Shown: positions 3 to 64,000, counted from the stretch's first letter. The stretch is 64,000 nt of DNA from Lepidodermella squamata (GCA_047495785.1 JBLDXI010000001.1:868001-932000), one strand, 5' to 3'. The notes: a model not told the origin generated them from the sequence alone. Program-made: numbers and translations.

Positions 3-1618
3 TGGCTGCCCAAGAAGAAATCGAATACCAGGAAAGCAAAGAAAACTCGTCTCGCGTCGATTTTCACTCTATCAAGGACCTACAACCTCGAACAACTGGA
101 GAGTTTCGACCACTGGGATCGATTTTTCGAGTCGGGTGGCGCCATCTTACGTTTGAATCAGCCGAAAGTTGTCAAAAAATCGAAGGGCAAAAGCAAGCCG
201 GCTACAGTCGGTCGCCGTGCCCAGTACTCTCGGATCAAAGAGCTAGGCGACTTTGTTTCCTGGCTTGCGGCGAATGGTCACATCGTCGAATCTCCGAAGC
301 TGAAATCATTGCTCTTGGATACAACGTCGCAGCTTCTCCAAGGCTCAAAACGAGAAAGCGGCCTCAAGAAAACCGAAAGAGCGAAGTTTGCCCATGACAT
401 GGAGCTACCGATGAAATTTTACCAGCACATCGACGAGCTGATCGCTGAACGCCGAAAGGGGCTGAACCTTTACGGGCTCAAAATCGCTCGAATTGCAGTT
501 GCGGCCAATTCTCATACCGGTTGCCGGTGAGTAACAGCTTCGTCTTAATTTTTCAAAGATTCAACAAACGTGAAAAATTTTTTGTAATTTTTTATCGATC
601 ATTTAAATTATTTTTCCAAATTCCATTTCACGTCAAAAAGCATAAATTTCTAAAAAAAATCGTGCGATCGGGAATTTTTCAAATTTAATTTTAATTTAAT
701 TTGAGGGCAATTTTCAAGTTCAAATGCATAAATTTCCAAGGTTGAATTTGATCGGAAATTCCATCAATCCTTAAAACAAACAAATCACCGATTCTGGAAT
801 CGATTATTCGCTTCAGTTTATTTCGCTCAAGTATTCAAATAATTTGGTGCTCACCACCGATTCAGAGGTGGACAAAATATTCAAGGTTTTATCATTTCCA
901 GCTTTTTCATCGTCATTTTTTATTTTTCAGAGCTTCTGGAATTCGGAAAATGAAACTTACTGAGTGGAAAGCGAGGGATGGCGATGCTGATGGAGAAGGT
1001 TGGGTTTGTGTTGAGGTAAAAGGAATGAAAAACTCGATTTCTGGATTCCCGTTCGTCACCTTCGACCCCGCAACAGCCGCCTTAATTCAAAGCTACATCG
1101 ATAATGACCGGCCGGCGTCGAAAAACAAGCGGGTTTTTTTGACTCAAAAACGAACAAGAATCAGTTCCTCGACGCTGAACGAGTACGCAAACCTCGGTTG
1201 GCCGTCGTTCAAAGAAAAGTTTCAGCCGAATTTCAGCCGGCCGCTCAGTGATACCTTTACACTTACCACCCAGCGCCGAGCAATCAATACTACTACGCGT
1301 TCAGAGAAGGACCCCGACCAGCCGCCTCAGGCCAAAGTTAATCAGGCGTTGGTGCAAAGTGAGCCCACGGGCGAGTCGGTCTATACCCTCACCGCTGCAG
1401 TTTCGGAGGCGATCGGGGTCGCAAAATGGGCGTACTACAAGTGTGCGAACCGCCTTGATCCGTCGAACCCAGAGCTACGCCCGTTCGCATACAGGCCTGT
1501 CAAAGCCGTCCCGCTTTCATCAAACAACACCGAGGGGTCTAAGGAGTCGAAGGATAGTGAAGACGAAAATTCCTCGAGCGAAGACGAAAATTCCAGCAGC
1601 GACGATGACTGCTGCTAA
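3..1618 (+). mobile_element. Spliced tyrosine recombinase (Crypton-like), 5' end outside the window; exons 3-526 and 931-1618
   Basis: The frame is open from base 3. Donor gtgagt at 527 and acceptor tttttcag at 930 join ...SHTGC-R-ASGIRKMKL (box I Arg). Further motifs: VEVKGMK (catalytic Lys region), VFLTQK, TTQRR (HxxR position) and QSEPTGESVY (HS...Y position). Acidic C-terminal tail. Confidence 0.7.
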
Positions 1619-2235
1619 AGTATTATTGTCTTGTGTTGTAGTTGATTTTTTACTTGATTTTTCGGCGCTCACATTGATCAAACTTGTGGAAGAAATTTTC
1701 AAAAGAATTAAATAATACAGAAATTCGGGAAGATAAAATTTCATTTTTCGGCGCAAAAAAACGGCGCAAAAAATCTTTTTTTCATCTGTTGCTATGTTCG
1801 CGCTCAATATTTAAAAAATTACGCTTGATCCTCACATTTTTATTATCTTCTTTACTATCTTCTCGTTTGATATATTGCTCGCGTAATTTCACGATGTCTG
1901 ATTTCATGATGTCATGTGATTTCTGTCACAAAAGTTGTTATCCAATTTGGTCTATCGTATCAATAAAAACGCTCGAGTTACGGCGATTACGCGATCTGAG
2001 TCTTGGAAATGCGAATGACGTAGGTGCGATGATGAGATGCGACGCGCAAGGCAGACCGTAAAATGCAACGACGCGCATCGGTTAGGAGAGAGGTGTTAAA
2101 AGCGTGTCCGCCATCGCCATTTTCAGCAACGGCCTTGAGCTACAATGACGCCAGGTGCGTATAAAAACCGGCGGAGCATCATCAGTCCAGCATTGGTATC
2201 ATTTTCAGCAATAAGTTTTTCGATTATTTCTCATA

Positions 2236-2727
2236 ATGCCTTCTTGGTCTGCGTATTTCGACCATCGGCGCCCTTGTCAGCTTTTCCGGGTACTTTGCTC
2301 GCCATCTGCGAGTGAAGGGCCGTCATCGTTTTCGACTGCAACCTCGACTACGACGACTACAACGAGCTCGCTGTCTTCGACTTCGTTCGATGACTTGCTG
2401 AAATCGCCGCAACGTTACTACGACGATATGCACGCCACCTACACCGCTTTTGTTGTAGTCATCGCGATCTTGGCGGTAAGTCTGTTGGTCTCCGTTGCGG
2501 TCGGCGTCGGTTATCTATTCCGCGCGGCCATCGCTAAGCGTTGCTGTCGCAAGGCGCCGATACGGCGACGTTTGAAGAAGCTGCCATCAACGCCGAGCGC
2601 CGCTAGCGACACGACTTTCTCGCGTGATCACCCTCGCCGCGGTCGTTCCGTTCTGAAGGCAGAAATCAAGGCAGAAGTGCATCAACCGGCTGACGAAGAA
2701 TCGCTGGAAGAACTGTTTTCAGCTTAA
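2236..2727 (+). CDS. Unknown single-pass membrane protein with a Ser/Thr-rich segment
   Basis: 163-aa ATG ORF. It has an S/T run, a hydrophobic helix (AFVVVIAILAVSLLVSVAVGVGYLF) and a Cys-Cys/basic cytoplasmic stretch. TATAAAAA lies at about 2160. Confidence 0.5.
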   Translation: MPSWSAYFDHRRPCQLFRVLCSPSASEGPSSFSTATSTTTTTTSSLSSTSFDDLLKSPQRYYDDMHATYTAFVVVIAILAVSLLVSVAVGVGYLFRAAIAKRCCRKAPIRRRLKKLPSTPSAASDTTFSRDHPRRGRSVLKAEIKAEVHQPADEESLEELFSA

Positions 2728-3583
2728 AATGCCGCCTTAAAGCGGACTTAAACCGGCCCTTTTCAGGGCCACAAGTGATTGCAACAGTGTTTTATTCCTG
2801 GTGTTTCCGGAGTATGAAAATAAAGTTCATATGAGAGCGAGCCGCGGTAGATGGTGCGTTGATAGTGTTTAGCCATTGTGTCAACAACTTGAGCGCATGT
2901 TTGCGCATTGCGTAATCGCCTGCTGTGCGCGAGCGCCATTTTGCGCCACAATAATATCGATATTTACAGTAATTATCAGAACTAGAACCGGCTAGTCGCG
3001 GTTCTGCTGATAAAGCTTCAGATAAAGGCCACTACGATAGCGATAGGCAGTGACATGAGAATAAATAAACTTCGTCTTCAGCAGTAATGTTCCGAAATTG
3101 ATATGAAAACGCAAACATATTTAGATTTGCTGGGAAAAAACGAGCGAAAATTTATTAGATCCGCCTTCAATGTCATTCAAGGCTCTTTACCTGCTATTCA
3201 AACAAACATACGAAATAACCTGTATATAACAATTACTATACAGTATTCATTAATGCTGATGAAAAAAACTGGCCGTAAGTTGGCAAAAACTCATGACCGC
3301 AAATACGGTTGTTAGCGTTTTTTTCAGCCAGGTATGTTGACACAGTCAGGTGGAGTGGCGTTTTTTCCCTCAGCTTGTGTATAGTACTAGATAAATTCGT
3401 ACACATTTTTCGATTTATTTCCCATCATTTTGCATGCAATATAACGAGCCGCAAATTGATTGCGGTTAAAAATGCTGTGAAAATCAAGATAGCTGCATCA
3501 TTTAATGTGTGTAACAAGTGGCCCTCGACACAGGTTGATATATTTTATAAATGATAAAATTGATTGATTATCAATCATCCGCA

Positions 3584-4795
3584 TCACTGCTCGTCGAGAC
3601 AAACAGTTCTCACGAGCATTTCAGTGACTAGATACGGGTCACAGTTGGCAGCAGGTCGCCTGTCCTCGATGTAGCCGCAATCGGCGGTTTTGCACGGGCC
3701 TGGAATGCGAACAGAGGCACCGCGATCGGCAACGCCCCATGTAAATTCGGCGTAGGACGATCCTAGTCGCGTTTTGTTGTCCTCGCCATTTTTCATGTCA
3801 TACTTCGGCATGTGAGCGAGATGGCGGACTTTCAGTTTTTCACAAGCAATTTCCATCGCTCTGAAAAAAATATTGAAAAATTGAATTAAAAAGACTAAAA
3901 ATCAACGATATACTTGAATCCGCCTGGTCTGCGCATTTCTTCTGTCGAAAAATTGCAATGAGCACCCGAGCCTAGCCAATCTCCGCCTCCTACGATTGGG
4001 GTAGGTTTGAAGGTGACATCGACGCCGAAATCCTCAGCAACCCTGGCTAGTAGGTAACGAGCCATCCAAACGTGGTCGCCGACATCAATGCCCTCACTAG
4101 GCCCGACTTGGTACTCCCATTGGCCGGGGACGATTTCCGCATTGGTTCCATCAATTTTCACGCCGGCGTACAGACACGCTCGCAAGTGGGAGTCAACTAT
4201 GTGACGGCCGTAGACGCGGCTGGCACCAACTCCACAATGCGCTGGTCCCATAGGCTCTGGGTAGCCATTTTTAGGCCACCCTAATAATTTCTTATCGACC
4301 TCGACCAAAAAATACTCCTGTTCGATGCCAAACCACGGTTTTTGATCTTTCGCTTTCTTCATAACCTCGTTGCATGACGCCCGATGGTTATTTGCTGTAA
4401 TAAAAGAGTTTGAAAAAATTCAGAAATAAAAATGAAAAATTACGGGTCGGTTTGCCGTCGACGTCGATAACATGGCAGAGAACAATTTTATTAGGATCGC
4501 CGAGAAACGGGTCTCGAAACATAGCAATCGGTTGTAGTACATCTTCATAGACAGGTTCGTGAATGTTTTGAGGGTTCGATGGGCGAGGCGACGACCAAGA
4601 GGGGACGGCTTCCAAAGTGGTAGCTTGGTCAGGGTTCAGAACCCGGCTCTTCGCTCGTGTCATTTCACCGCCGCCGGGCCACGTGTCAATCCAGACGTAG
4701 GTGACCACAACCTTACCGCCCTGATCGAGCCTGGCATAGCGGTCGTAAGTCGCCTGATCGAGAACGGCTTCCCTTGCTAACTTCATTGACGCCAT
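3584..4795 (-). CDS. Divergent glutamine synthetase II paralog with a remodelled ammonium site; exons 4795-4444, 4394-3914, 3860-3584
   Basis: Motifs [52 protein letters not shown]. Introns of 49 and 53 nt restore one uninterrupted frame and sit at the same positions as in the neighbouring GS. Confidence 0.92.
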
Positions 4796-5758
4796 TACTA
4801 ATTCAGAAATATTATGTTCGCAACTGCTATCTTAATATTTTCCTAATGAACTAAGTTGACAAGCGCGGGAGCAGTTACGGTCAAAATAGGGTTATCATCA
4901 TGCAGCGGAGACTCTCAAGCCTTATCTGTGTACGGGCTTTTGTTATCAGTAGATGGGACAACGTTGTTTTTGAAACTTTGAGAGATATTAAAATTGCTGA
5001 TAAAAAATTGGGTCTTAAGCTGGATGGGCGAATTTTCGGTTATTATGAAAAGCGCGAAAACATTTTCGATCGATAATTTGAATTTTTCAAGCTCGCGCGT
5101 GGTTGCGAAAATTCAATGAATGGGTAACTTATTGGTCTGCGATAACAAATAGTGAAGCGCATATGGAGTTTACCCAGTAACACGTCAGCAAGTATTTTTT
5201 AACCTTGAAAACATTAATCACTGTATTGGTAAATTAGCAGAATGAGGAAAGGAGGGTGAATTTATTGATCGTGGCGGAATGGGACATTGAGAGTGCCGGC
5301 AACTGATAAGCTCTCAGCAAATGTTCGCTCTTTTTTCTTGTCACCGTTTTTGAGATTTCGTAGAATTGATTCGCATTTCTTGAAACCGACAGGAGCTGCG
5401 GCTTTGAGCCATTAAAGAGGCCAACCATGAAAATGCAAATTTTCCAACTGCCAAAACGCTACAGGGACATTTTTCATTTTTATTTTTTTAGCTCTTAATT
5501 ATATGGCATAAAATTAAATTATATCCGAAACATTTTAATCGCCACGAAAAAAAAGAATTCGAAAAAGCTAACGACCACATAATATGATTATCAACGAGAA
5601 TAGAAGCAAATTTCTGTACACATAAACTTTGCTTATTTTTTTTGTTATATAATTTCCTTCATCAAATTATCAAGCACTGTTAAATGTCCATGTTTTCAGT
5701 TGCCATCAAAAATTGAATCGGAGCTTAAATTTATATAGTCAGTAATATTTCCCGTCGA

Positions 5759-7247
5759 CTATTGTTCGTTGAGGCAAGTCGTGCGAACGATCATCTCGGT
5801 GACAGCGTACGGATCGCAGTTGCTGGCCGGTCGGCGGTCTTCGAGGTAGCCGAAGCCATCGGCGGCGGTTTGACGAGGAACGCGGATCGAGCAGCCGCGG
5901 TTGGCGACGCCCCACGAGAATTGCCCGATGTGGGCAGTTTCGTGGTGACCAGTCAGGCGACGCCTGTTGTCTTCGCCGCCCTTGGGATCATAGCAGCGGA
6001 TATGACACATGTGACGCTTTTCCAACTTGCTGATCGCATCTTCGATGGCCCTGGAAAATCAAGGAGAATTAATCCATAAATTAAATTGAAATAAAAATTA
6101 CTTCATGCCGACGCCTGGGGTACGCATGGCTTCGGTCGAGTAGTTGGTATGGCAACCAGCGCCGTTCCAGTCGCCAGGGATCGGCTTCGGGTCAAGGGTG
6201 ACAATGACGCCGAAGTCTTCGGCGACGCGGTGCAGAATGTAGCGCGAAACCCACAAGTGATCGCCCATTTCGATGCCCTCGCACGGGCCGACCTGGTACT
6301 CCCACTGGCCGGGCATCACCTCGCCGTTTGTGCCGCAGATCTTGATGCCGGCGTACATGCACGCCTTGAAGTGAGCCTCCATGATGTCGCGGCCAAACGC
6401 GCGATCGGCGCCAACTGAACAGTAGTAGGGTCCCTGCGGGCCGGGGAAGCCGTTCTTCGGCCAGCCGAGCGGCTGCTTATCGAAATCAAGCATGGTGTAC
6501 TCCTGCTCGAGGCCGAACCACGGCTTCTCGGCCTTGGCGGCTTCCATCGCTTCGAGGCATGACTTGCGGTGATTCGAGGCTACATAGAAAAAAATTGATT
6601 CAAATTATAAGCATTTTGATAGACCTAAAATGACCCCGACCACCAGGACAAATTATTTGCCAGCCAGGCATATCAAATCGCAGATAACCTAGTTTATCCC
6701 TAGTTTTTTCCCCCACAGAAATTGTGATAAAAAAAGCACTTCTACTGATTAATTGAGCATCAAAATAGATTTTCCCGAAAAGCTCAATTTTTTTAATTTG
6801 AGATTATTTCATCTGCTCATTTCCATTCAAATTCATTTCAAATTTCCAAATGAAGATGAAATAGGCCCTTTGATTTTCTCCGACCGGTAAAAATTACCGA
6901 ATATTTGACTTACCAACAGGTTTTCCTTCAAAGTCGTAGACGTCGCACAGGACGAGGATGTTGTCGCCACGGAGGAACGGATCGGGGAAAATGGCAACCG
7001 GGTTGATGTAGGTGTCCGAGTTGTGGCCCGTCGCCTGACCGGTCGAGGAGCCGTCGAAATTCCAAACAGGCAGCTCAGACACGTTTTTCACCGGGGCCGC
7101 GAGCCACTTCGACTTGGAGCGCAGGTTCTCGCCGCTACCGTCGATCCACAGGTAGGTGGCGATGGCCTGACCCTTCTGGTCCAGGTCCATATAACGGTTA
7201 TACACCGTCTTGTTCAGAGTTGCGGTCGGAGCAACGACGTGCGACAT
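5759..7247 (-). CDS. GLUL: Glutamine synthetase (type II, canonical); exons 7247-6914, 6579-6102, 6050-5759
   Basis: Motifs [83 protein letters not shown]. Splice junctions checked for frame. Confidence 0.97.
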
Positions 7248-9729
7248 TTGAGATGAACGGAAACAAATCAAAAATAACAAAAAACTAGATTCTTTATAGA
7301 GATCACAAGGATATAAAAATGAAGAATTGAATTACGCGGCAATTTCATGTTTCATCGAGCTTACATTTACCACGCATCTACTTGCGCTTCCAGGCACAGA
7401 AATGACAATAGAAAAGAAGCACAATAAATACAGAGTACCCGGCAGATCTAAAGATGCACCTCGATAAACAGTGGGCTATACAATAAATACTGGCTACTGC
7501 GCAACGAACAGCTGAGTACTAGAAATCCATGTGTTTGGCAAGCACTATAATGTATAGCGCCGTTCAGTGTTTACTGGCAGGCGTATCCTATTTTCCACCA
7601 GAAATGATGGTAAAAAAATCAGGCCACATTCGCGCGAGTGGTAAAAAGCAGAACTGATCTTTTTCGAGAAAAAAACACAATTATCACGATTAAGTTGCAT
7701 GGCGTGGCGAAGGCGAGGGGAAAAATTGCGGTGAACCTGCCGTGCCGGTGGGTTAAGTCTACACGGGCAATTGATATCGCGATTTGAGCTGACGTCTGTC
7801 CCATCACGAGGACGCCATGTTATTCGCATATTTTGTAAAAAAAACGCGCGCGGAAGTGAAACGAGAGATAGCAGCAGGCGACCACTTGCTGTGTGTGTCT
7901 GCGCGATAATAAAAGCGTCCTCTAGTGACCTAGAACCTGGAGCGTTATCAGGCCACCCATTAATTAGAAAAGTTAATAAGTGCAACAACGCAATGAGAAA
8001 AAAGGCAATTTGGTATGGTTCAGAGACAAAATTGCTTCGCAAATGACTGGCCTGAGGATTTAAATACTGAGGAAAGCCTGCCGGGTGTTGAATATTATGC
8101 CATGTTATTAGGCAGACAACCGCATCATCTGCGCGAATCGCGTGGGTAATGAGACTTACATGATGATAAATTTCAGACTTGATTACGCTGCAATGGCGTG
8201 AATTTTGAAGACTCTGAACCTTCAAGTGTTGGACCACGTGTTTTCGCGACAAATGGCGCATGGCAGCGTGATTGTTGGCCAAAGTTCAACCATCCGGCGG
8301 GGAGGGACTTGTTTTGTCTTGTTTCCAGCCAGTCTAGGCCATTGAATTCGAACACGTTTTAACCGCGAAAATCGGCGTGGCAATAGATTGTTTTACCACA
8401 CACGACCGATCACTGAATGCCTGAATGCCGGAAAATAAAATTATTGGACCACTACAGGAAAATTAACTGATGCCGCATATGAGAACCTTAAAAAAACTGT
8501 ATGCACTCGAAGAAGACTTTTTCTTGAACTATCGGACATCGGACAATTTACTGGTCAGCTAGTATTGCAAAAAACGATGCACTCGCTGCTGATAAGAGCC
8601 CCGTTAGATATCAGGTATAACGAAACATCCAGACATCTTCATTTCTAATATGATAAAAGTGTATACATTCGCGAAAGTCGGCTCTACCCCAGGGGAACGT
8701 GAAACGGCGGACAAAAAATTAAGCGAATTTTACCCCATGTATAGGTAGAGCTATACTGAAAAGCTGCGGTTATAATAAAATTGTGTCAAAATGAGAATTC
8801 AAATTAGTTCAGCAAATTCCCGGCGGACACTGCGAATGATAATTATTTTGATAGATAAACCTTTATTCTATCATCGCGCATTGAAATAACAATTCTATCG
8901 TCTAACTTTATGATGAATGAAATATCATCGTGCTTCAAGGTCGGCTAATAATAGTTAGCTGTATAGGAAGGGTTTTTCACGCGGATAAGAAATCGATATC
9001 AAACGTGATGGCCTTGTAATTACTGACAGTCAAAGCACGTAGTTGTTATCATAGCGGGGCATTTTAGCGATGCCCTAGTTTCTTCTACGATTTGAATGGA
9101 AATAATATACCAGTAGCAGGTCCGTTTTATCATCGTTGCTGCTTTCATGACCTACTTGATGACGCAACTTCTGCATTCCAATTTTTTTCGAGGTGCACAT
9201 TATACGGCGCGCTTGAACCCTTCGCTATAAAACCTCATTCGGAAACAGAAAAAAACTGTCCAAACCTGAGGTCAAATATTCTGACTCATATTCATCATAT
9301 ATACTCATATTCAAAAAGACGAGATGTTTATTCATCCAAACAAAACTAGGTAAAAAAATCGTCAGATTATCAGCCTTCAAGAATAAAATGAAAGGAGCGA
9401 TAAGAAACAAAACATAATTAAATTATGTATAACAAAAATGGAAGGTTTCAGCAGCAAGAATAAATAGCAAGAATTATCATGGCACAAAGTAGTAAAATAA
9501 AACTATGTCATCTAGAAGTACAAACAATTAAGGCGAAACGTATTCTCAATATTGTCAATGGAATGCGATAAATTATTCAATGCAAGAGGTAAAACTACGG
9601 CTTAGAGCCAAGAATGCTGGCCTGTGATGAGAAGAAGATCTGAGAGTGATTGAAAGATTTTTCGACTTGAACAGCTTAGCACACTTGGCACCTGGCTGCT
9701 ATTATAAAAATATCCATTTCATCGTTTTC

Positions 9730-11645
9730 CTATCTCTCGCTGAGCTTCAGGCGTATCTCATTGTCAGCTGGTACCATGATATGGGTGACATGAACAGGCA
9801 ATCGCTCTCGATCACCAGCGTCGGCCGGCCACAGTTCATATTTACTGAGAATTCGAACCAACGTCAGTTTCAGCTCAAGCATGGCGAAACGTCTCCCGAT
9901 GCACTCGTGCGGCCCCATGCCTAAAAAATAAACAAAATTAAAATCAAATCAGGAAATTAGGTCACAAATTTACCAAAACCGAGAAACGCTCCAGGCGGTC
10001 GATTTGAGCTGTATTCAGGCGCGAAGCGTTCCGGATAAAACTCGCTAGGATCTACTGGACCCCAATACTCAGCATTTTGGTGAATTCTCCAAACATTCGC
10101 TACAACAGAACCGGGCGGTTCAGGAGCTGGGACGCCGCAAATTTCCGTTTCAGCATGCGAAAATCTCGTTATAATGTGAATGGCTTCGGGGTACAGCCGG
10201 ACAGTTTCTAGACACACCCAATCGAGGTACTTCATTTTGTTTACCAACACATCATAGTCAGCTTTCAGGCCACTTTCCAAGCCTAGTTCATCCCGAAACT
10301 GCATTATTTCGTCGTAGAGCCTGTTCTATATATCGGAACATTTTTATAATTAAGTATGAAGAGGAAGTGTGAATTACTAACCTGAACCAAAGGGTTTTTG
10401 GCCAAGGAGTCCAAGCAATATCCGATTGTTGTGCTTGTTGTTTCGTAGCCTTTTTGATCAAATTAAGTGATTTATATGCGAATCTTGGAAAACCATTACC
10501 TGCCATCAAAAGAGCTATTATATTGGTCCTTAGCTCGCCTTCATTAAGGTAGGTCTTGACATTCTTCTCATCAAAGCAGTTTCCGCTATGTGGGCCATTT
10601 TTGAAAGCTGTTTTCTCGATCAGCAGTTGTATCAGGCGTTTTGGTAACTGGGCATGGATAATGGCTGGATTCTCTCGCTGACGATCAGCTTCTCGAATGA
10701 AATGCTGCACGGTGGGCTCGTAAAACCGTGTCAAATTATTGAGCGGACTCAAGACGCCCCAAGAAAACTTCATCAAGAAATTTGTCAAAATCTGATAAAA
10801 ATGTAGTAAAAATCAAGTTGAAAATTCATGTTTAAAGGGCTACATACCTTTATCGGGTATGCGATTTCAGGTAGCGCTGACACAAACAGCATGATTTTAG
10901 GCGGATAAAGGACGACGTTCGAAAACAGTTTGTTGGTTTCGTGGTAGACCTTGTTGCTAAGATTCGTTCCGCTTTGATCCTGCTCTTGCAGGTCCATTTC
11001 AGCGCCTAGAGCAGTTTGACTGAACAACTGCATAGCATAGCGCTGCAGCGGGTCTCTAATGTCGAACGCTTGACCAGAAGCCGCCTTTTGCTGCAACACT
11101 CGCATTAGGATCGTGACATTTGACTCGAACTCGCTAATAAGCTTTCGTAGGTTCGAGTCTGTGAAGAAAGGACTCGCGGCTTTCCGAGCGACTCGCCAAT
11201 GATCTTTCCGACCAATCAGAATGCTCGTCAGACCGCTATGCGGCTCCTTGTCCGAATCAGGTTGAAATACGACAAACTGCGATCGAAAAACAAAAATAAT
11301 GGATGAAATAATAAAATATAATTAAAATACCAATCTCCCGGAAAATGATTTCGATTGTTCGACACACATGCTTTCTACAGCCTTTGGTAGGGAAATCACC
11401 ATCACAGGCCTGGGCCCTTCGTAGTAGCCGAAAATGTCTCCATATTCTTCCGCCCATCGGTTGTAAACAAGATGTCTATCGCCTCTGCTGATTTCTTTGA
11501 GGTTGCCGTAGAAAAAATGAGGCACAGGTCCGCGAATACCTCTGTCAGAAAAGTATGTATGCTTTTTCCGCCGATACATATAGAAAACACCGATCGCAAT
11601 AGCCGCCGCAGCAGGTATTGCCGATAACCAGTTGATCGCAGGCAT
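9730..11645 (-). CDS. Cytochrome P450, CYP3-clan-like, multi-exon
   Basis: N-terminal anchor followed by GIRGPVPHFFYGN. I-helix AG|YETT is split by an intron. Also ETVR (ExxR), FYPERF and the heme motif FG|MGPHECIG. Confidence 0.93.
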
Positions 11646-16434: not shown

Positions 16435-18290
16435 ATGTCTCTAACGTATTCATGGATATTGTTCTTAGCTGTTGGACTCTCGCTGGATGCTCCAATCAGC
16501 AGCCAGAACGTAATGAATTCAATCGCTTTCTAAGTTACTTAATAATGGCCATTTAGGTCGAATGTAGCATCCAGCCGGCTTATGATGTCATCATAATCGG
16601 CGCCGGCGTCTCGGGCCTTTCCGCAGCAGTTGAGCTATATACCAAGCGGAACGTGGGAAATTTTATAATCCTCGAAGCAAGGGAAAGAATCGGCGGCCGC
16701 ATAAACACGGTTCGCCATGCTGATGGTTTGTACGAAGACTTCGGAGCTCAATGGGTAAGATCATTCAGGGCGAAAAACCCGAACTACACACTGTACATTT
16801 TAGGTTCACGGAGCCGGAGATCATGAGCTGGTTGATTACCTGAAGAACAACAATCTCCTTGTACCCGAGAGTCAAAAACCGAGAGGGAATGACGCCTTCT
16901 ATAGAATGGTACGCTATTGTTAAAAGTTTATTACAATTATCTCAAGTGTTTCTTAAGGACGGTAGTTCAGTTCCGTCGGAGGTGGCAGAAAACGCCAGGC
17001 AAGGATGGGAATATGCAAAGGAGCGAGTTGATTATTCTAAAACAAGCTCTTCGATAGGTGACGAGTTGAGACAAATTTTCAGCCAATGGCTGCGAAGCAA
17101 TGCGGGGAACGAGGAGGATAAGACAGCGGTCTTCAACTGGTATTACAATTTCGAAAACACCGAAACTGCTGAGGAACTCACTCGAGTGGGAATGGAACAA
17201 GATTCAAAATATAAAGAACTCCCAGGAGACAAAGAAAACCTAGTGAAAAATGGGTGGTTAACTGCGCTAGAAAGTTTTACAGCATACACTCCGTTAAATT
17301 CTCTGTTGCGCCTCAACTCGACGGTGAAAACCATAAGATACGCGCTCAACTGCGGCGATCAGAGAAGAGTCGCAGTGTATTTGGCTGATGGCCGCATCTT
17401 CGTTAGCAATTCGGTAATCATTACGTTACCACTCGGAGTTCTGAAAGCAGGTTTAATTGGATTCGAACCAAGTCTTCCCCAAGAAAAACTGAAGTAAGCC
17501 TTTCCTTTACCTTCATGCCTGAGAAGTAAGTTCTCTTCTGTTAATCAGCGCTATTGGTCGGGTTAATTTCGGTTGCATGGTCAAGCTTTTCCTTTTCTTC
17601 GACGAAGCATGGTGGGGTACAAGATTGTCCACCGTCAACGCTGTATATCTGAACTCCATTATCGACGACATAACTGGTCAATATGTCAATCCAAGCATGT
17701 CACGATGGTATCGAAACATGGTTGGCTTTAACACGATGGTGGGTAATAGCAGAGTCCTGCAAGCCTGGCTGACCGGTGACATAGCTCGAGTCATTGAAAG
17801 GCTACCTATGGAAGAAGTGTATCGAGTCGTCAGTTTAGTTTTGCGAAAGGCCTTAGGAGAAGATTTCAACGTGAGAGACCCAGTCAACATACAGAGGTTG
17901 CATTCGTATAATTGATCCAAATAGTTACAACTGTTGTGTTTATTTCAGGACCGAGTGGTGTAATGATCCATATACAATGGGTGCCTATTCCTATGTTGGA
18001 GTGGGTTCTCCTGCAAAGGATTTCGAAATTCTGGCGAGGCCAGTACCTTCGGATAAACCCGTGAGACACTTTTTTCTTAGAGTTCATTAGCCTATTTATT
18101 ACTGCTTTAATAGGTTCTGTTCTTTGCCGGCGAAGCCACTAGTCTTAATCAGTGGGCGACTGTCCATGGCGCATATTCGACCGGAATTCGGGCTGCACGT
18201 GAAGCTACGAATTCTGCTCATCAGTTATCTTGCACATGGATGATTGTTTCTGTGTACCCAATTATCCGGATATTTTTGCAGCTTTATTAA
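16435..18290 (+). CDS. Secreted flavin amine oxidase (copy B) with a hydrophobic C-terminal tail
   Basis: Signal peptide MSLTYSWILFLAVGLSLDA. Same FAD motifs and exon pattern as copy A. Ends REATNSAHQLSCTWMIVSVYPIIRIFLQLY*. Confidence 0.88.
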
Positions 18291-33622: not shown

Positions 33623-34923
33623 TTAAGATTGAGTGCGGTTAAGATAATGATGGCTGAAATCTGATCTTGAATCAGCCGGTGTGATCGAATTAAGGGGGCG
33701 AACTTTAACCAACTTGGGTCGATTGCGAATCTCATACCAGTACCGCCGAATGTCATCCGAAAATCCAGGCCTGACGCTTTGAATAATCGGCCCCAATATC
33801 ATCTCGAACATGAATAAAAGAATAGTCGCCTTGTGCCAACTTGCGGACAGAACTCGAGGCCCTATATCGTCGTAAAAAATTAGGAAGAAGAACGACAGAA
33901 ATGTCGGGATGTGGAAAAGAGAAAAAGCGAAGAAGGATGCCAGCGATTGCTTCACGAAGAACAATTCGCGCTTCTGCCAATCAACCATTACTTGCGCTGC
34001 ATTACTGGTCCTTGTTTTGGTACCTTTGTTTGCTGTAATTTGACCGAAAAATTTAGTTTTATGGGCGTGAAGCTTGCTAAAGATACTCCTGGAAAAAATA
34101 ACTAAAATTGCTTCAATTCAGCAGATGAAAGCAAACCAGTAGTTGTAGGCTATAAGGATATCAGGAATAAGCACTACGATCAAAACGTAGTAAAGCGAGA
34201 TAAGCAGCGCAGTATCGTAGTTCCCAACCAGCCGCATGTCGAACCCACTGCAAACGGGCACGGGGGTTCCATTATTCGTTAAGCCAGGGATAGACACAGC
34301 CCTTAGCTGGAAAGACTGATAAGGATAGACAGCCAATGTGCCGAAAAGCAGGAATCCTATTAAGGTTGAAATACCTGCCATCACCATGACCTATTAAAAA
34401 TTTAATCTCAAAATTCAAAGACTTAGGTATTTCTGTCAACAACCTTTCTAGTGTTTGCTGAGGAGTTAGGATTATTTGAAAGAAGACAAAGTCGCCTCTC
34501 ATAGCTGATCAACATGAAAAACCAAGTTCCCTGAGAGCCAGTGGTAAAAAGGAACCAAATGGTACCGATACATGTCGATTCTCCCAACTCCCAAAATCCA
34601 GTGGCAGTCGTTACTAATATCGCGAAAGTGTAACCGATACTGAAAATTACTGAACTCAGCGCGAGAAGAGACATCAGCGCAAGAAAATCTTTTCTGACAC
34701 CCCTTCTATAAACTATCACGATGTTAGCTACATTAGCGACTGTAACTAAGATGGTGGTTATAACAAATGCGATTGCAAAAGGCAGTCTATCTTGGAGAGA
34801 GGTCTCGCTAAAGTCGTGAAACCAGCCGACGAAATAAGGACGGGATTCATTGAAACCATTGTCAGGTAGCCGGAGCATCAGCCAAGATGTTCCTATTGTC
34901 GTCAAATTCGGTATTGCTGACAT
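33623..34923 (-). CDS. Orphan rhodopsin-like 7TM receptor, 3 exons
   Basis: Joining the ORFs gives seven hydrophobic helices. TM1 Asn in VANVAN, WELGESTC before TM3, ISYERR as the DRY equivalent, an ECL2 Cys, and FHIP in TM6. The exon 2/3 junction was checked in frame. Confidence 0.82.
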
Positions 34924-35972
34924 TTTGTTATAAGAACATTTTTTGGAGTGACTGACATGAAGAACGATGTACCTGGGCATTTATAGGCCAATTTTAATCC
35001 AAGGTTTTGCGACGTGATAAAAAATTCAATTTGCTAATGCTAATTTTCAACGACTCATTACGCTCATCACTCCTACCTGATGTGCCTGTAAGTTCATGAT
35101 TGCTCGTTTTTAATCCTGAAACACATATATGTGACGAAGATGACGCAAATATGCGCAGGACAAACATTCCAGGTTCTATAACTTGGTCTTACTTCGGACA
35201 GCTGTGTCCGAAATAAAACCACGTTTCAGTGCAGTGTCTTTTAAGGTGAACGAATTCTTTCTAACTTTCAGCGCGTTGAAAAACTGCAAATGCTGGTATC
35301 AATCACGATAAATTAGTACCTGTAACCTGCTGGACAGCCCGCTAGAGGCATGCTGGAGGGTCAAAGGTCACATTTAAGCGATTTTTGCTTCTTTAAAAAA
35401 ATACCGCCGTAGAAAACTGCTTTGAAACTGAAAACCTTGAACTGTTGGACGTCTAATCAGTTTGTCAGGATTCAGTCATCATTTGAAGGTGTAGAATCTC
35501 AACGCTCCATTTTGTCATTTTGAGCGATGCTTAAAACGTTGAAATAAATCCATGATGTTCAAAGCCAAAGTTGTTCAAAGCAAAAATACACCGAATAAGA
35601 CTATTATTTTTTACCTTGATCAATTTGCAGGAACCCTAGTGACCAAGTTGCCTCCAAATATTAACTCCAATTATATCCTTACAACGGAATTCCATTTTAA
35701 CCTCAAATGGAATAGTTGTCCTGGCTATTCCTTCACAGCCACCCCAAGTTTCTGTAAACTTTATGAAGAATCTAGAAATAATCTACAGAAAGTCTCTAAT
35801 AGCTCAATGATGATACCTGTAAAAGCTAAAAGCACAACGCGTGCCGCTTACGCACGCAGAGGTTAAATCGAAAATGTACACAGTGGCGAGGGTTTTTCGT
35901 GCTCAAACGCCTGCCAACGAGATAGCGTGAAGACTATAGTGAATTTTTTCATCGTCTTCATTACATGAAGAA

Positions 35973-56325: not shown

Positions 56326-57608
56326 TTTCGTTTCATCATGCGGCAAAACCGACTCGCAATGTCTCTACCTAATTTTGAAAACAAAGCAGAAATCAAAAGT
56401 CAATGATATTTCCAACCGAATTGATTCTTTATTTTGATTACGCGCATGTTTTCACAGCGATTTCAAGACAACAGTTATAGACACCTAAGACATCAACAAA
56501 GAGAGTTGTTAGAACAATGTGGTTTCAAATGGCGAGCATATTATGGAAGACATTGTTGGACTAGGTTAAAAAACTGTTAAAAAACGTTCATTTTCTGAAA
56601 GCGCAACAAATCGCATTGATTTAACAAGCGCGGATGGTCCATTCAGACGGATCGTCGATCAACTGGACGCGGCTGCCACTGCTGCTAGTAGGGTGCTTCA
56701 AGAATCGACGGTTGTTGCTATTCTTCAGGTAGATGCAGTCGTCGAATTTGATTTGACCTTTGCCGTTGTTGCATTTGATGATCTGCCAATGGAACTTGCT
56801 ATTCGTGGTGTGACGAGCGTCACGGTAGTACAGCCAAGAGTGGTTCTCGAAAAGCCAGCGGCCGTTAGAGCTGATGAACACGTAATCGCCAGTCGTTATT
56901 TGTTTGCCACGGCTGAGCCCCAAATGGACGAAGATGTGCGGGACGGGCGGGGCCTGGTACTGGCCCTCGTCGTTTGAACCAGGCGTTGAAAGGCCCTTGT
57001 TCGTGTTGCCGAGTAGGCATAATTGCGTGACGCCAGTCCAGATGTACGTATCGACAGGCTTCGGCGTCGTCACAGGCGTCGGGTAGGCCGGAGGTTCGCA
57101 CGAGTCGACGATGCCAGCAGCCTGGGCGTACACTTCGCAGTAATTCTCAAGAGCCATCGTGAGAGCAGCACGTTTCTTAGCCAGAACCGTCGCGTCAAAA
57201 TCTGGGAAGTACTTGGGCAGCAGGACGTTGACAATCGACTGCAGCCTGGTGATTTGAATAGGCACGGGGTTGTCAAAGACTTGGCCGACCCACAACTCGG
57301 CCTTCTTGTCATCAGTGGTCAAGTTCGCTAAACAACGATGAAACAAATAGCTAGAAAATGCGTCATGAAAATAACTTACAGACAGCAGGTGGCTTGGATC
57401 CAATGGAGATGGTTGCCCGGCTTGAGACCTGAAACAAAAAGTTGAACAAAGAAGTTAAATCATGCTAGTTGAACCTTTGAGTTGAACGTAGAGATGCGCT
57501 GTTCGAGTTCCGCTGTGGAGATACCCATCTTGGCAGCAACTGACACGAGACCGTAGGTTCCGGAAACTTCAGTAGCCAACTTGGCATCGGTGGCACGTTC
57601 TTGAAATT
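56326..57608. repeat. Near-identical direct repeat of 62718-64000 (offset 6392 bp)
   Basis: The ORF translations are identical. I saw only two single-base differences (near 56406 and 57499). The repeat continues past the window end. Confidence 0.97.
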
Positions 57609-58391
57609 TGGACGAGTCAGACTCATGAATAGTGAAACGCTCGCCGTACGACGCCCCCATCACCATTGACGCGACAACGTGGGTACCGAAACTTCCGAAG
57701 AAATTGATGTAGCTATTAAAAACAATAAATAATTTCGGTAGTGTTTTAAAAAATTAAATTACGCCTCATCGTATGAATCAGTCGAGAATTTTTCAGGCAA
57801 CTGTTCAACGGCCAACCGAAAGTTGTAGTCGACATTGGGCGTGTCATACGCATTGAGAGACGCAGAGTAAACGCTGCATTTCGCCGATGTCTCGATGACC
57901 AAGCTGCTCGATTTCTCCATTTCCTTGTTGATCGATTTGTAATCGAGGCTTCCTTGGAACGCAGCTTTGGCCAACTTGCCGTAAGACACTTCGCTCTCCA
58001 TTGTGATGCCTTTCCTCAGATCTTCCAGGTAACTGCGGCTGCTGTTCGAGTACTTGGAGCCAAAATCCAGCGAGCACGAAAGGTCGTTGACAACATCGAC
58101 GTATTCCGGGATGACGTAGCGCAAATCAGCGGTTAGCCGGCCGCAGAATTTGCTCATGAGGTCGAAGACGCGCTGGCGGAAGCCCGGGTCGATGCCTAAC
58201 GAATGCGGGTTGCCAGTAAGAACGTCGTAGCCTTTACCGAGGAAGTCGATGTTGTTGAAGACAGCCTTCGTATTGCTTCCGCCTGTTGTAACCGGCATCG
58301 GCGGACACTTCGAACGGTCAGCAGGAGTTGTTTGCCCATGAACCAGTGATATCAGCAGTAGACACCCTATAGCGCTCCAGAACCATAACAT
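56621..58391 (-). CDS. Secreted MACPF/perforin-like protein (apextrin/PLP-type) with a beta-rich C-terminal domain, 4 exons
   Basis: Signal peptide, then IDFLGKGYDVLTGNP..IDPGFRQRVF, AKCSVY and FFGSFGTHVVASMVMGASYG (MACPF signature). SIGSKPP...W..QV.DNPVPI is restored by removing a 52-nt intron. Confidence 0.9.
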
Positions 58392-63012: not shown

Positions 63013-64000
63013 TTAACAAGCGCGGATGGTCCATTCAGACGGATCGTCGATCAACTGGACGCGGCTGCCACTGCTGCTAGTAGGGTGCTTCAAGAATCGA
63101 CGGTTGTTGCTATTCTTCAGGTAGATGCAGTCGTCGAATTTGATTTGACCTTTGCCGTTGTTGCATTTGATGATCTGCCAATGGAACTTGCTATTCGTGG
63201 TGTGACGAGCGTCACGGTAGTACAGCCAAGAGTGGTTCTCGAAAAGCCAGCGGCCGTTAGAGCTGATGAACACGTAATCGCCAGTCGTTATTTGTTTGCC
63301 ACGGCTGAGCCCCAAATGGACGAAGATGTGCGGGACGGGCGGGGCCTGGTACTGGCCCTCGTCGTTTGAACCAGGCGTTGAAAGGCCCTTGTTCGTGTTG
63401 CCGAGTAGGCATAATTGCGTGACGCCAGTCCAGATGTACGTATCGACAGGCTTCGGCGTCGTCACAGGCGTCGGGTAGGCCGGAGGTTCGCACGAGTCGA
63501 CGATGCCAGCAGCCTGGGCGTACACTTCGCAGTAATTCTCAAGAGCCATCGTGAGAGCAGCACGTTTCTTAGCCAGAACCGTCGCGTCAAAATCTGGGAA
63601 GTACTTGGGCAGCAGGACGTTGACAATCGACTGCAGCCTGGTGATTTGAATAGGCACGGGGTTGTCAAAGACTTGGCCGACCCACAACTCGGCCTTCTTG
63701 TCATCAGTGGTCAAGTTCGCTAAACAACGATGAAACAAATAGCTAGAAAATGCGTCATGAAAATAACTTACAGACAGCAGGTGGCTTGGATCCAATGGAG
63801 ATGGTTGCCCGGCTTGAGACCTGAAACAAAAAGTTGAACAAAGAAGTTAAATCATGCTAGTTGAACCTTTGAGTTGAACGTAGAGATGCGTTGTTCGAGT
63901 TCCGCTGTGGAGATACCCATCTTGGCAGCAACTGACACGAGACCGTAGGTTCCGGAAACTTCAGTAGCCAACTTGGCATCGGTGGCACGTTCTTGAAATT
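63013..64000 (-). CDS. Second MACPF gene copy (3' part; the 5' end is beyond the window)
   Basis: Essentially identical to 56621-57608. Confidence 0.88.

Follow-up and report, generated by a model that had tools for sequence, protein, structure and literature searches.

Within the 64,000-nt window (the whole stretch of Lepidodermella squamata DNA that was analysed), the gene at 3584-4795 on the minus strand, here called gene A, is a tandem duplicate of the type II glutamine synthetase (GS-II) of this organism, functional, transcribed and maintained by selection. We put the probability at about 0.5 that its product is an active ligase with a changed substrate, a predicted activity that would include the gamma-glutamyl-amine case. 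Gene A is an animal-type GS-II copy with a bacterial pattern, in that the phosphoryl-transfer core is kept and the acceptor pocket is rebuilt. Its expression, selection and conservation together make it a candidate for a new eukaryotic ligase activity.

The tandem pair of glutamine synthetase genes

Gene A and its neighbor, gene B, lie on one strand about 960 bases apart. They are 54% identical, and both introns occupy matching positions and are in matching phases in the two genes. The features of the pair that are discussed below are as follows:

3584..4795, minus strand: gene A, divergent GS-II paralog of 369 aa in three exons, with an open spliced translation
4444-4795, 3914-4394 and 3584-3860, minus strand: exons of gene A, the last of which includes the stop codon
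4395..4443, minus strand: intron 1 of gene A, 49 nt, GT..AG, phase 1; joint 4394/4444 in an X3 contig
3861..3913, minus strand: intron 2 of gene A, 53 nt, GT..AG, phase 2; joint 3860/3914 in X1 and X3 contigs
4565..4597, minus strand: N-domain loop WSSPRPSNPQN of gene A (aa 67-77), with D63 lost and a basic residue gained
4234..4248, minus strand: GPAHC of gene A (aa 167-171), GPYYC in canonical GS-II, with Y161A and Y162H
3958..3990, minus strand: GGGDWLGSGAH of gene A (aa 253-263), with N248 changed to Leu, a 2-aa insertion and the metal ligand H253 kept
3743..3769, minus strand: RLGSSYAEF of gene A (aa 309-317), with R299 kept and a 5-aa deletion that takes out the E305 flap
3656..3733, minus strand: VADRGASVRIP ... 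PCKTADCGYIEDRR of gene A (aa 321-346), with R319, R324, Y336, E338, R340 and R341 kept
5759..7247, minus strand: gene B, canonical GS-II of 367 aa, with exons 6914-7247, 6102-6579 and 5759-6050

Full-length homology, including the catalytic domain, places gene A in the GS-II superfamily. In HMMER searches of the PDB with the separate exons, GS-II chains matched at E=1.7e-14 (exon 1), 5.8e-64 (exon 2) and 6.1e-21 (exon 3). The best matches are all GS-II, and GS-I chains reach only E about 1e-5. The Pfam domain Gln-synt_C is recovered in exon 2 at 45.4 bits (cut-off 24), and Gln-synt_N was not detected in exon 1. In gene B the ammonium-site residues are all canonical. A tblastn search of the 64,000-nt window found no third GS-like sequence.

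Contigs from two public cDNA-like runs (X1 and X3) and one DNA-like run (X2) were placed on positions 3400-7400. The cDNA contigs show both introns of gene A spliced out at the predicted joints (3860/3914 in X1 and X3; 4394/4444 in X3) and spliced joints at both introns of gene B. Their coverage is zero in the introns and the intergenic DNA, and SMART cDNA adaptor ends are present in one of the libraries, while X2 covers the region evenly throughout, with no splice joints. In X1 the word depth, which reflects expression only poorly, is near 109 for gene A as against 500-3000 for gene B. Comparison of the runs with the window yielded strain differences in the coding sequence of gene A, 23 of 24 of which are synonymous, the exception being V222I. 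Given their transition/transversion mix, the neutral expectation is 30% synonymous (P = 1.2e-11). The strain differences in gene B are likewise all synonymous (7/7). Gene A is transcribed and under strong purifying selection; it is a real and constrained gene, and no decaying copy. The intact ORF and splice sites claimed in an earlier reading made from the sequence alone are borne out by the open 369-aa translation and by the presence of both joints in cDNA. The refutation which that reading had named, no expression with dN/dS near 1, is ruled out by the spliced cDNA and the excess of synonymous differences.

The two copies show a sharp contrast in codon usage, with a GC3 of 0.55 in gene A versus 0.78 in gene B, and the lower value is consistent with lower expression of gene A. 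Elsewhere in the window, a multi-exon cytochrome P450 gene lies directly past gene B (9730-11645, minus strand; Pfam p450 E=7e-15 in one exon). An ORF at 16859-17497 on the plus strand, about 12 kb from gene A, matches the Pfam flavin-containing amine oxidoreductase family (E=2.1e-10), a relation to gene A of proximity only. The ORF at 34423-34980 (minus strand) has a weak match, at 20 bits and under the cut-off, to the rhodopsin-family 7tm_1 domain. Two ORFs on the minus strand, 56621-57403 and 63013-63795, encode identical proteins of 260 aa each, without a Pfam match, and look like a recent segmental duplication; the first of them adjoins a MACPF-like ORF at 57759-58391. The 7tm_1-like and MACPF-like ORFs, along with best named matches to animal GS, make an animal origin of the genome likely. 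An Rfam scan of the window, and of the scaffold L002 described below, returned no match.

Active-site residues kept and replaced in gene A

Active-site residues were tabulated by site in vertebrate numbering and compared in HMMER alignments to solved eukaryotic GS-II structures. Gene A keeps the metal ligands E134, E136, E196, E203, H253 and E338, the ATP residues N255, S257, R262, R324 and Y336, and the arginines R299, R319 and R340, which contact the carboxylate and phosphate. All 12 of the metal, ATP and carboxylate ligands that were checked are kept in gene A and in G4 and G3, two genes of a relative, despite overall identities of 50-58%. The earlier claim that gene A had kept the ATP/metal machinery is thus upheld.

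The four motif replacements that the sequence-only reading had described are each seen in both the HMMER alignments and the site tables. WNFDGSS of canonical GS-II has become WSSPRPS, within WSSPRPSNPQN (D63 to Pro, G64 to Arg), and GPYYC has become GPAHC (Y161 to Ala, Y162 to His). G(D/N)WNGAGCH has become GDWLGSGAH (N248 to Leu), with a 2-aa insertion just upstream, ahead of GDW; a separate 3-aa insertion lies past the WID motif. Where canonical enzymes have RLTGxHETxxIxxF, gene A has RLGSSYAEF, and the alignment confirms the claimed deletion of the Glu flap, five residues including E305 being missing. The losses of Y162 (His), N248 (Leu) and E305 (deleted) are as had been claimed. For the D63/S66 pair the claim stands in part, since D63 is clearly lost (Pro) and S66 is still opposite a Ser in a gapless alignment. 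In the pocket loop two acidic residues are gone and a conserved Arg/Lys has been gained, and position 304, near the former flap Glu, is occupied by an aromatic residue, Tyr.

In canonical enzymes Asp63 is the proton acceptor from ammonium and Glu305 stabilises the intermediate (PMC5192420); the Salmonella counterparts of D63, E305 and Y162 are D50, E327 and Y179 (PMC6529630). Glutamate is coordinated in the Salmonella enzyme by N264, G265 and R321 (PMC5403932), the counterparts of N248, G249 and R299. G249 and R299 are kept in gene A, and N248 is Leu in gene A and G4 and Phe in G3.

The distribution of the changes was examined over 81 alignment columns that are at least 95% invariant among 251 canonical GS-II sequences. 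Gene A and its ortholog (G4) keep 62 of these 81. The other 19, which have changed, fall into a few groups (the 63-75 loop, 146/158/162, 248 and 302-306), and none of the ATP-site or metal-site columns among the 81 is changed. As the changed columns cluster and the ATP and metal columns are untouched, the residue pattern is not due to chance.

Related genes in a relative and in other animals

An exhaustive HMMER profile search with exon 2 recovered only two sequences bearing the signature of gene A, P0002 and P0003. The two are on a single eukaryotic scaffold (20.5 kb, 38% GC, short introns) of an ENA metagenome assembly. This scaffold of a relative (L002) holds four GS genes:

L002 7757-8909: G2, canonical GS-II, 81% identical to gene B
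L002: G4, intact ortholog, 58% identical to gene A, with WSHPRPSNVHN, GPAHC, GDWLGSGLH and the matching 5-aa deletion
L002 10001-11142, plus strand: G3, 53% identical to gene A, with an in-frame TAG at a Trp position, YSCPKPTS, GPAFW, DDWFGSGAH and a 6-aa deletion
L002 6164-7236, minus strand: G1, which needs a frameshift and is without the GPYYC segment

The signature shared by gene A and G4 comprises WSxPRPSN, GPAHC, GDWLGSG and the RLGxxY deletion, and the remodelled loop is among the best-conserved stretches between the two. In G3 the counterpart of the loop WSSPRPSNPQN is YSCPKPTSVKD. G1 and G3 are either pseudogenes or errors in the assembly of the metagenome scaffold; the TAG of G3 falls exactly at the expected Trp of the xWG motif. 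Between gene A and G4 dN is 0.33, versus 0.13 between gene B and G2; dS is saturated for both pairs, so that only dN and the within-species polymorphism test can be used. Gene A evolves about 2.5 times faster than gene B, yet it is constrained. A C-x5-C pair in the segment aa 321-346 is common to gene A, G4 and G3; it was rejected as a marker of their clade, as other GS-II sequences commonly have the two Cys as well.

Word-based searches with P0002 and with exon 2 returned nothing nearer than canonical GS, at 55-68% identity. Back-translated GPAHCGVGA gave 20 matches over the JGI metagenomes, all on contigs of 53-74% GC and none GS-like by tblastn, and these were rejected as chance matches and not taken as members of the clade. 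Outside the GS cluster, a comparison of synteny found nothing in common between the window and L002. The best named matches of the relative's canonical GS are to molluscs, cnidarians, an annelid and a bryozoan (70-73%). In two trees gene B (5759-7247) and G2 branch outside Cnidaria plus Bilateria (99/96 and 98/92), a placement that contrasts with the spiralian best named matches.

Beyond the relative, we considered a set of 516 collected proteins plus five gene models built here. Several GS-II-like proteins in the 516-protein set keep the 12 ligands and have lost some or all of D63, Y162, N248 and E305. Examples are two proteins of the orthonectid Intoshia linei (OAF70327 and OAF71571), proteins of the mites Oppia nitens (XP_054166545) and Medioppia, of the snail Pomacea canaliculata (XP_025112718) and of the beetle Henosepilachna, and those of several fishes. 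In the GS-like proteins of moths, E196 and H253 are lost as well. His162 occurs in ten alignment rows, two of which (G4 and P0002) represent one gene. D63, N248 and E305 are missing too from eight of these ten rows, in which position 248 is usually hydrophobic and position 304 aromatic. Across the 516 proteins and five models, the change of Y162 to His together with loss of D63, N248 and E305 and full ligand retention is found in at least five lineages. The rows P0028, P0387, P0081, P0190 and P0086, which include mites, snail and beetle, have His162 with the loss of D63, N248 and E305 and all aligning ligands kept; P0387 is a C-terminally truncated fragment, so that its ligand count covers aligning positions only. 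Such proteins may constitute a recurrent functional class. A literature search for animal GS-II-like ligases or pseudoenzymes found no paper on these proteins.

Gene A, G4 and G3 form a clade in the tree (100/99). This clade groups with the Intoshia, Oppia and Pomacea proteins, and in a second tree with the beetle and further divergent proteins, on long branches. Holding gene A, G4 and G3 together with gene B and G2 is not rejected by the AU test (p=0.47), and constraining the snail protein to mollusc GS gives a tree slightly better than the unconstrained one (p=0.59). Given the long branches and these two results, common origin and convergence, the latter being what the sequence-only reading had proposed, are inseparable for the animal GS-like proteins. 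A single ancient clade of all the divergent proteins, with support of 96/93 on long branches and with neither alternative rejected by the AU test, is accordingly not claimed here.

Predicted activity and comparison with known systems

As a ligase with a changed substrate, the gene A protein most likely binds ATP and two metal ions and would carry out the first half-reaction of GS, in which a carboxylate is activated to an acyl phosphate. Binding and deprotonation of ammonium and closure of the Glu305 flap would no longer be possible. With the ammonium site and flap gone, the second half-reaction would probably proceed on another, larger nucleophile, to which the acyl group would be passed in place of ammonia. 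The change of N248 to Leu alters the amino end of the acid pocket, so the acid itself may be a derivative of glutamate or some other carboxylate. His162 is a candidate replacement for the general base lost with Asp63, and the same change recurs in proteins of other animals. Retention of the ligands in gene A, G4 and G3, with the changes confined to the ammonium loop, 158/162, 248 and the flap, argues for this ligase, as do the expression of gene A, the purifying selection on it, the intact ortholog, the bacterial precedent and the recurrence of His162 in other lineages. Against it count the compatibility of ligand retention with a nucleotide-binding pseudoenzyme as well, and the recovery, across all searches, of only one other locus with A-like genes. 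The lost equivalent of N264 and the shortened flap also count against it, and the shift from acidic to basic residues in the pocket loop speaks against a cationic amine acceptor. Moreover, two of the three divergent copies in the relative contain a stop codon or frameshift, so the wider family does decay.

A non-catalytic role is possible, though we think it unlikely: gene A might encode a pseudoenzyme or regulatory subunit that co-assembles with the product of gene B, or a moonlighting protein that only binds. The active sites of GS-II sit between neighbouring subunits, so a gene A neighbour would present a gene B subunit with a loop lacking Asp63. The changed loop does belong to the inter-subunit part of the site (PMC6529630, together with established knowledge of GS structure). 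Both residues of the second half-reaction (D63 and E305) are gone, and the two genes stand in tandem and appear in the same cDNA libraries, gene A at the lower word depth in X1. What tells against such a subunit is that the 12 ligands and every ATP-site invariant column have been kept across three paralogs at about 50% identity, when the moth GS-like proteins without E196 and H253 show that unneeded ligands can drift. The conservation of the replacement loop between gene A and G4 also suggests a new binding function over mere loss. Were gene A to prove a pseudoenzyme, it would provide a clear example of a regulatory subunit of GS, and under this reading or the ligase reading alike the automatic label 'glutamine synthetase' would be wrong. 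By comparison, the view of gene A as a duplicate that is decaying into a pseudogene could call upon the higher dN of the A-G4 pair, the lower GC3 and the broken sister copies G1 and G3 in the relative. It is essentially refuted by the open ORF, correct splicing, expression, the 23 of 24 synonymous polymorphisms and the intact ortholog with matching derived motifs.

We know of no gene assigned to the enzyme that conjugates monoamines with gamma-glutamyl in invertebrates. The sub-case of the changed-substrate ligase that the sequence-only reading had put forward, a gamma-glutamyl-amine ligase joining Glu to a polyamine or biogenic amine, would offer one, and we regard it as doubtful. In its favor, D63, Y162 and E305 are lost as in PauA7 and GlnA4, and gamma-glutamyl conjugation is named in the literature among the ways in which invertebrates metabolise monoamines (PMC8402476; PMC6434831); the flavin amine-oxidase-like ORF lies 12 kb off, again as proximity only. 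However, the Glu contact N248, which GlnA3 and PauA7 keep as N264, is Leu in gene A and G4 and Phe in G3. The loss of acidic residues and gain of Arg/Lys in the pocket loop disfavors a cationic amine acceptor, and the scaffold is that of GS-II, whereas all characterised members are GS-I-like. A wider proposal, to which we assign a low probability, makes gene A part of a recurrent animal class of GS-II-derived ligases, ancient or repeatedly evolved, that would conjugate biogenic amines or other nucleophiles through gamma-glutamyl or related acyl groups. The marks of the class may be His162, a hydrophobic residue at 248 and an aromatic one at 304, with the ATP/metal machinery intact. If true, it would supply the gene for the long-reported gamma-glutamyl (or related acyl) conjugation of invertebrates. 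That gene A still encodes a glutamine synthetase, in which other residues such as His162 handle ammonia, would accord with the retention of the first-half-reaction machinery and of R299, R319 and R340. It is rendered very improbable by the absence of Asp63 and Glu305 together with that of Y162 and N248, and by the adjoining canonical and more highly represented GS.

In comparison with known systems, gene A shares with canonical GS-II (human GLUL, 2OJW/2QC8/8DNU; Drosophila GS2, 7CPR; gene B) its full-length homology and two-domain layout, metal, ATP and carboxylate ligands that all match, and the lack of a targeting peptide. It differs from them in the replacement of D63, Y161, Y162 and N248, the deletion of the E305 flap and the insertions of 3 aa and 2 aa.

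To our knowledge, the repurposing of GS into a gamma-glutamyl-amine ligase is documented only for bacterial and archaeal GS-I-like enzymes. These gamma-glutamylamine synthetases (PauA7, PuuA, Streptomyces GlnA2/GlnA3/GlnA4, NpaA1 and Haloferax GlnA-2) resemble gene A in retaining the metal and ATP residues and in having other residues at the equivalents of D50, Y179 and E327; as with Tyr 304 of gene A, they have an aromatic residue near the former flap Glu. PauA7 and GlnA4 retain the residues for metal, Glu and ATP but lack D50, E327 and Y179 (PMC6529630), and in GlnA3 and PauA7 the Glu-binding N264/G265/R321 are kept (PMC5403932). The parallel with bacterial GS-like synthetases proposed earlier is real. 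It extends to the loss of D50, Y179 and E327 as in PauA7 and GlnA4, but not to the equivalent of N264, which the bacterial enzymes keep and gene A has lost. Further, the loops at the flap are enlarged in PauA7 and GlnA4 and the flap of gene A is shortened (PMC6529630), and the bacterial and archaeal enzymes are built on a GS-I-like dodecamer scaffold, whereas gene A is GS-II-derived. The tree places gene A among eukaryotic GS-II, outside the GS-I-like lineage, which points to independent evolution and not to membership of the bacterial family.

Lengsin of the vertebrate lens is a GS-I-derived protein with degenerate catalytic residues, and offers a precedent for an animal paralog of the GS superfamily that no longer makes glutamine. 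Unlike lengsin, gene A is GS-II-derived with all catalytic ligands kept. A lengsin-like dead enzyme with lost metal and ATP ligands, which the sequence-only reading had named as an alternative, is contradicted by the 12 of 12 ligands kept in three paralogs. The GS-like proteins of other animals (Intoshia, mite, snail and beetle) are, like gene A, GS-II-derived with every aligning ligand kept, and His162, a hydrophobic 248 and an aromatic 304 recur among them. They differ at the flap, which carries substitutions in the Intoshia, Oppia and Pomacea proteins and is gapped at E305 in that of Henosepilachna, as against the 5-aa deletion of gene A. GS-like genes that bear the signature of gene A are thereby present, though unstudied, in an orthonectid, in mites, in a snail and in a beetle.
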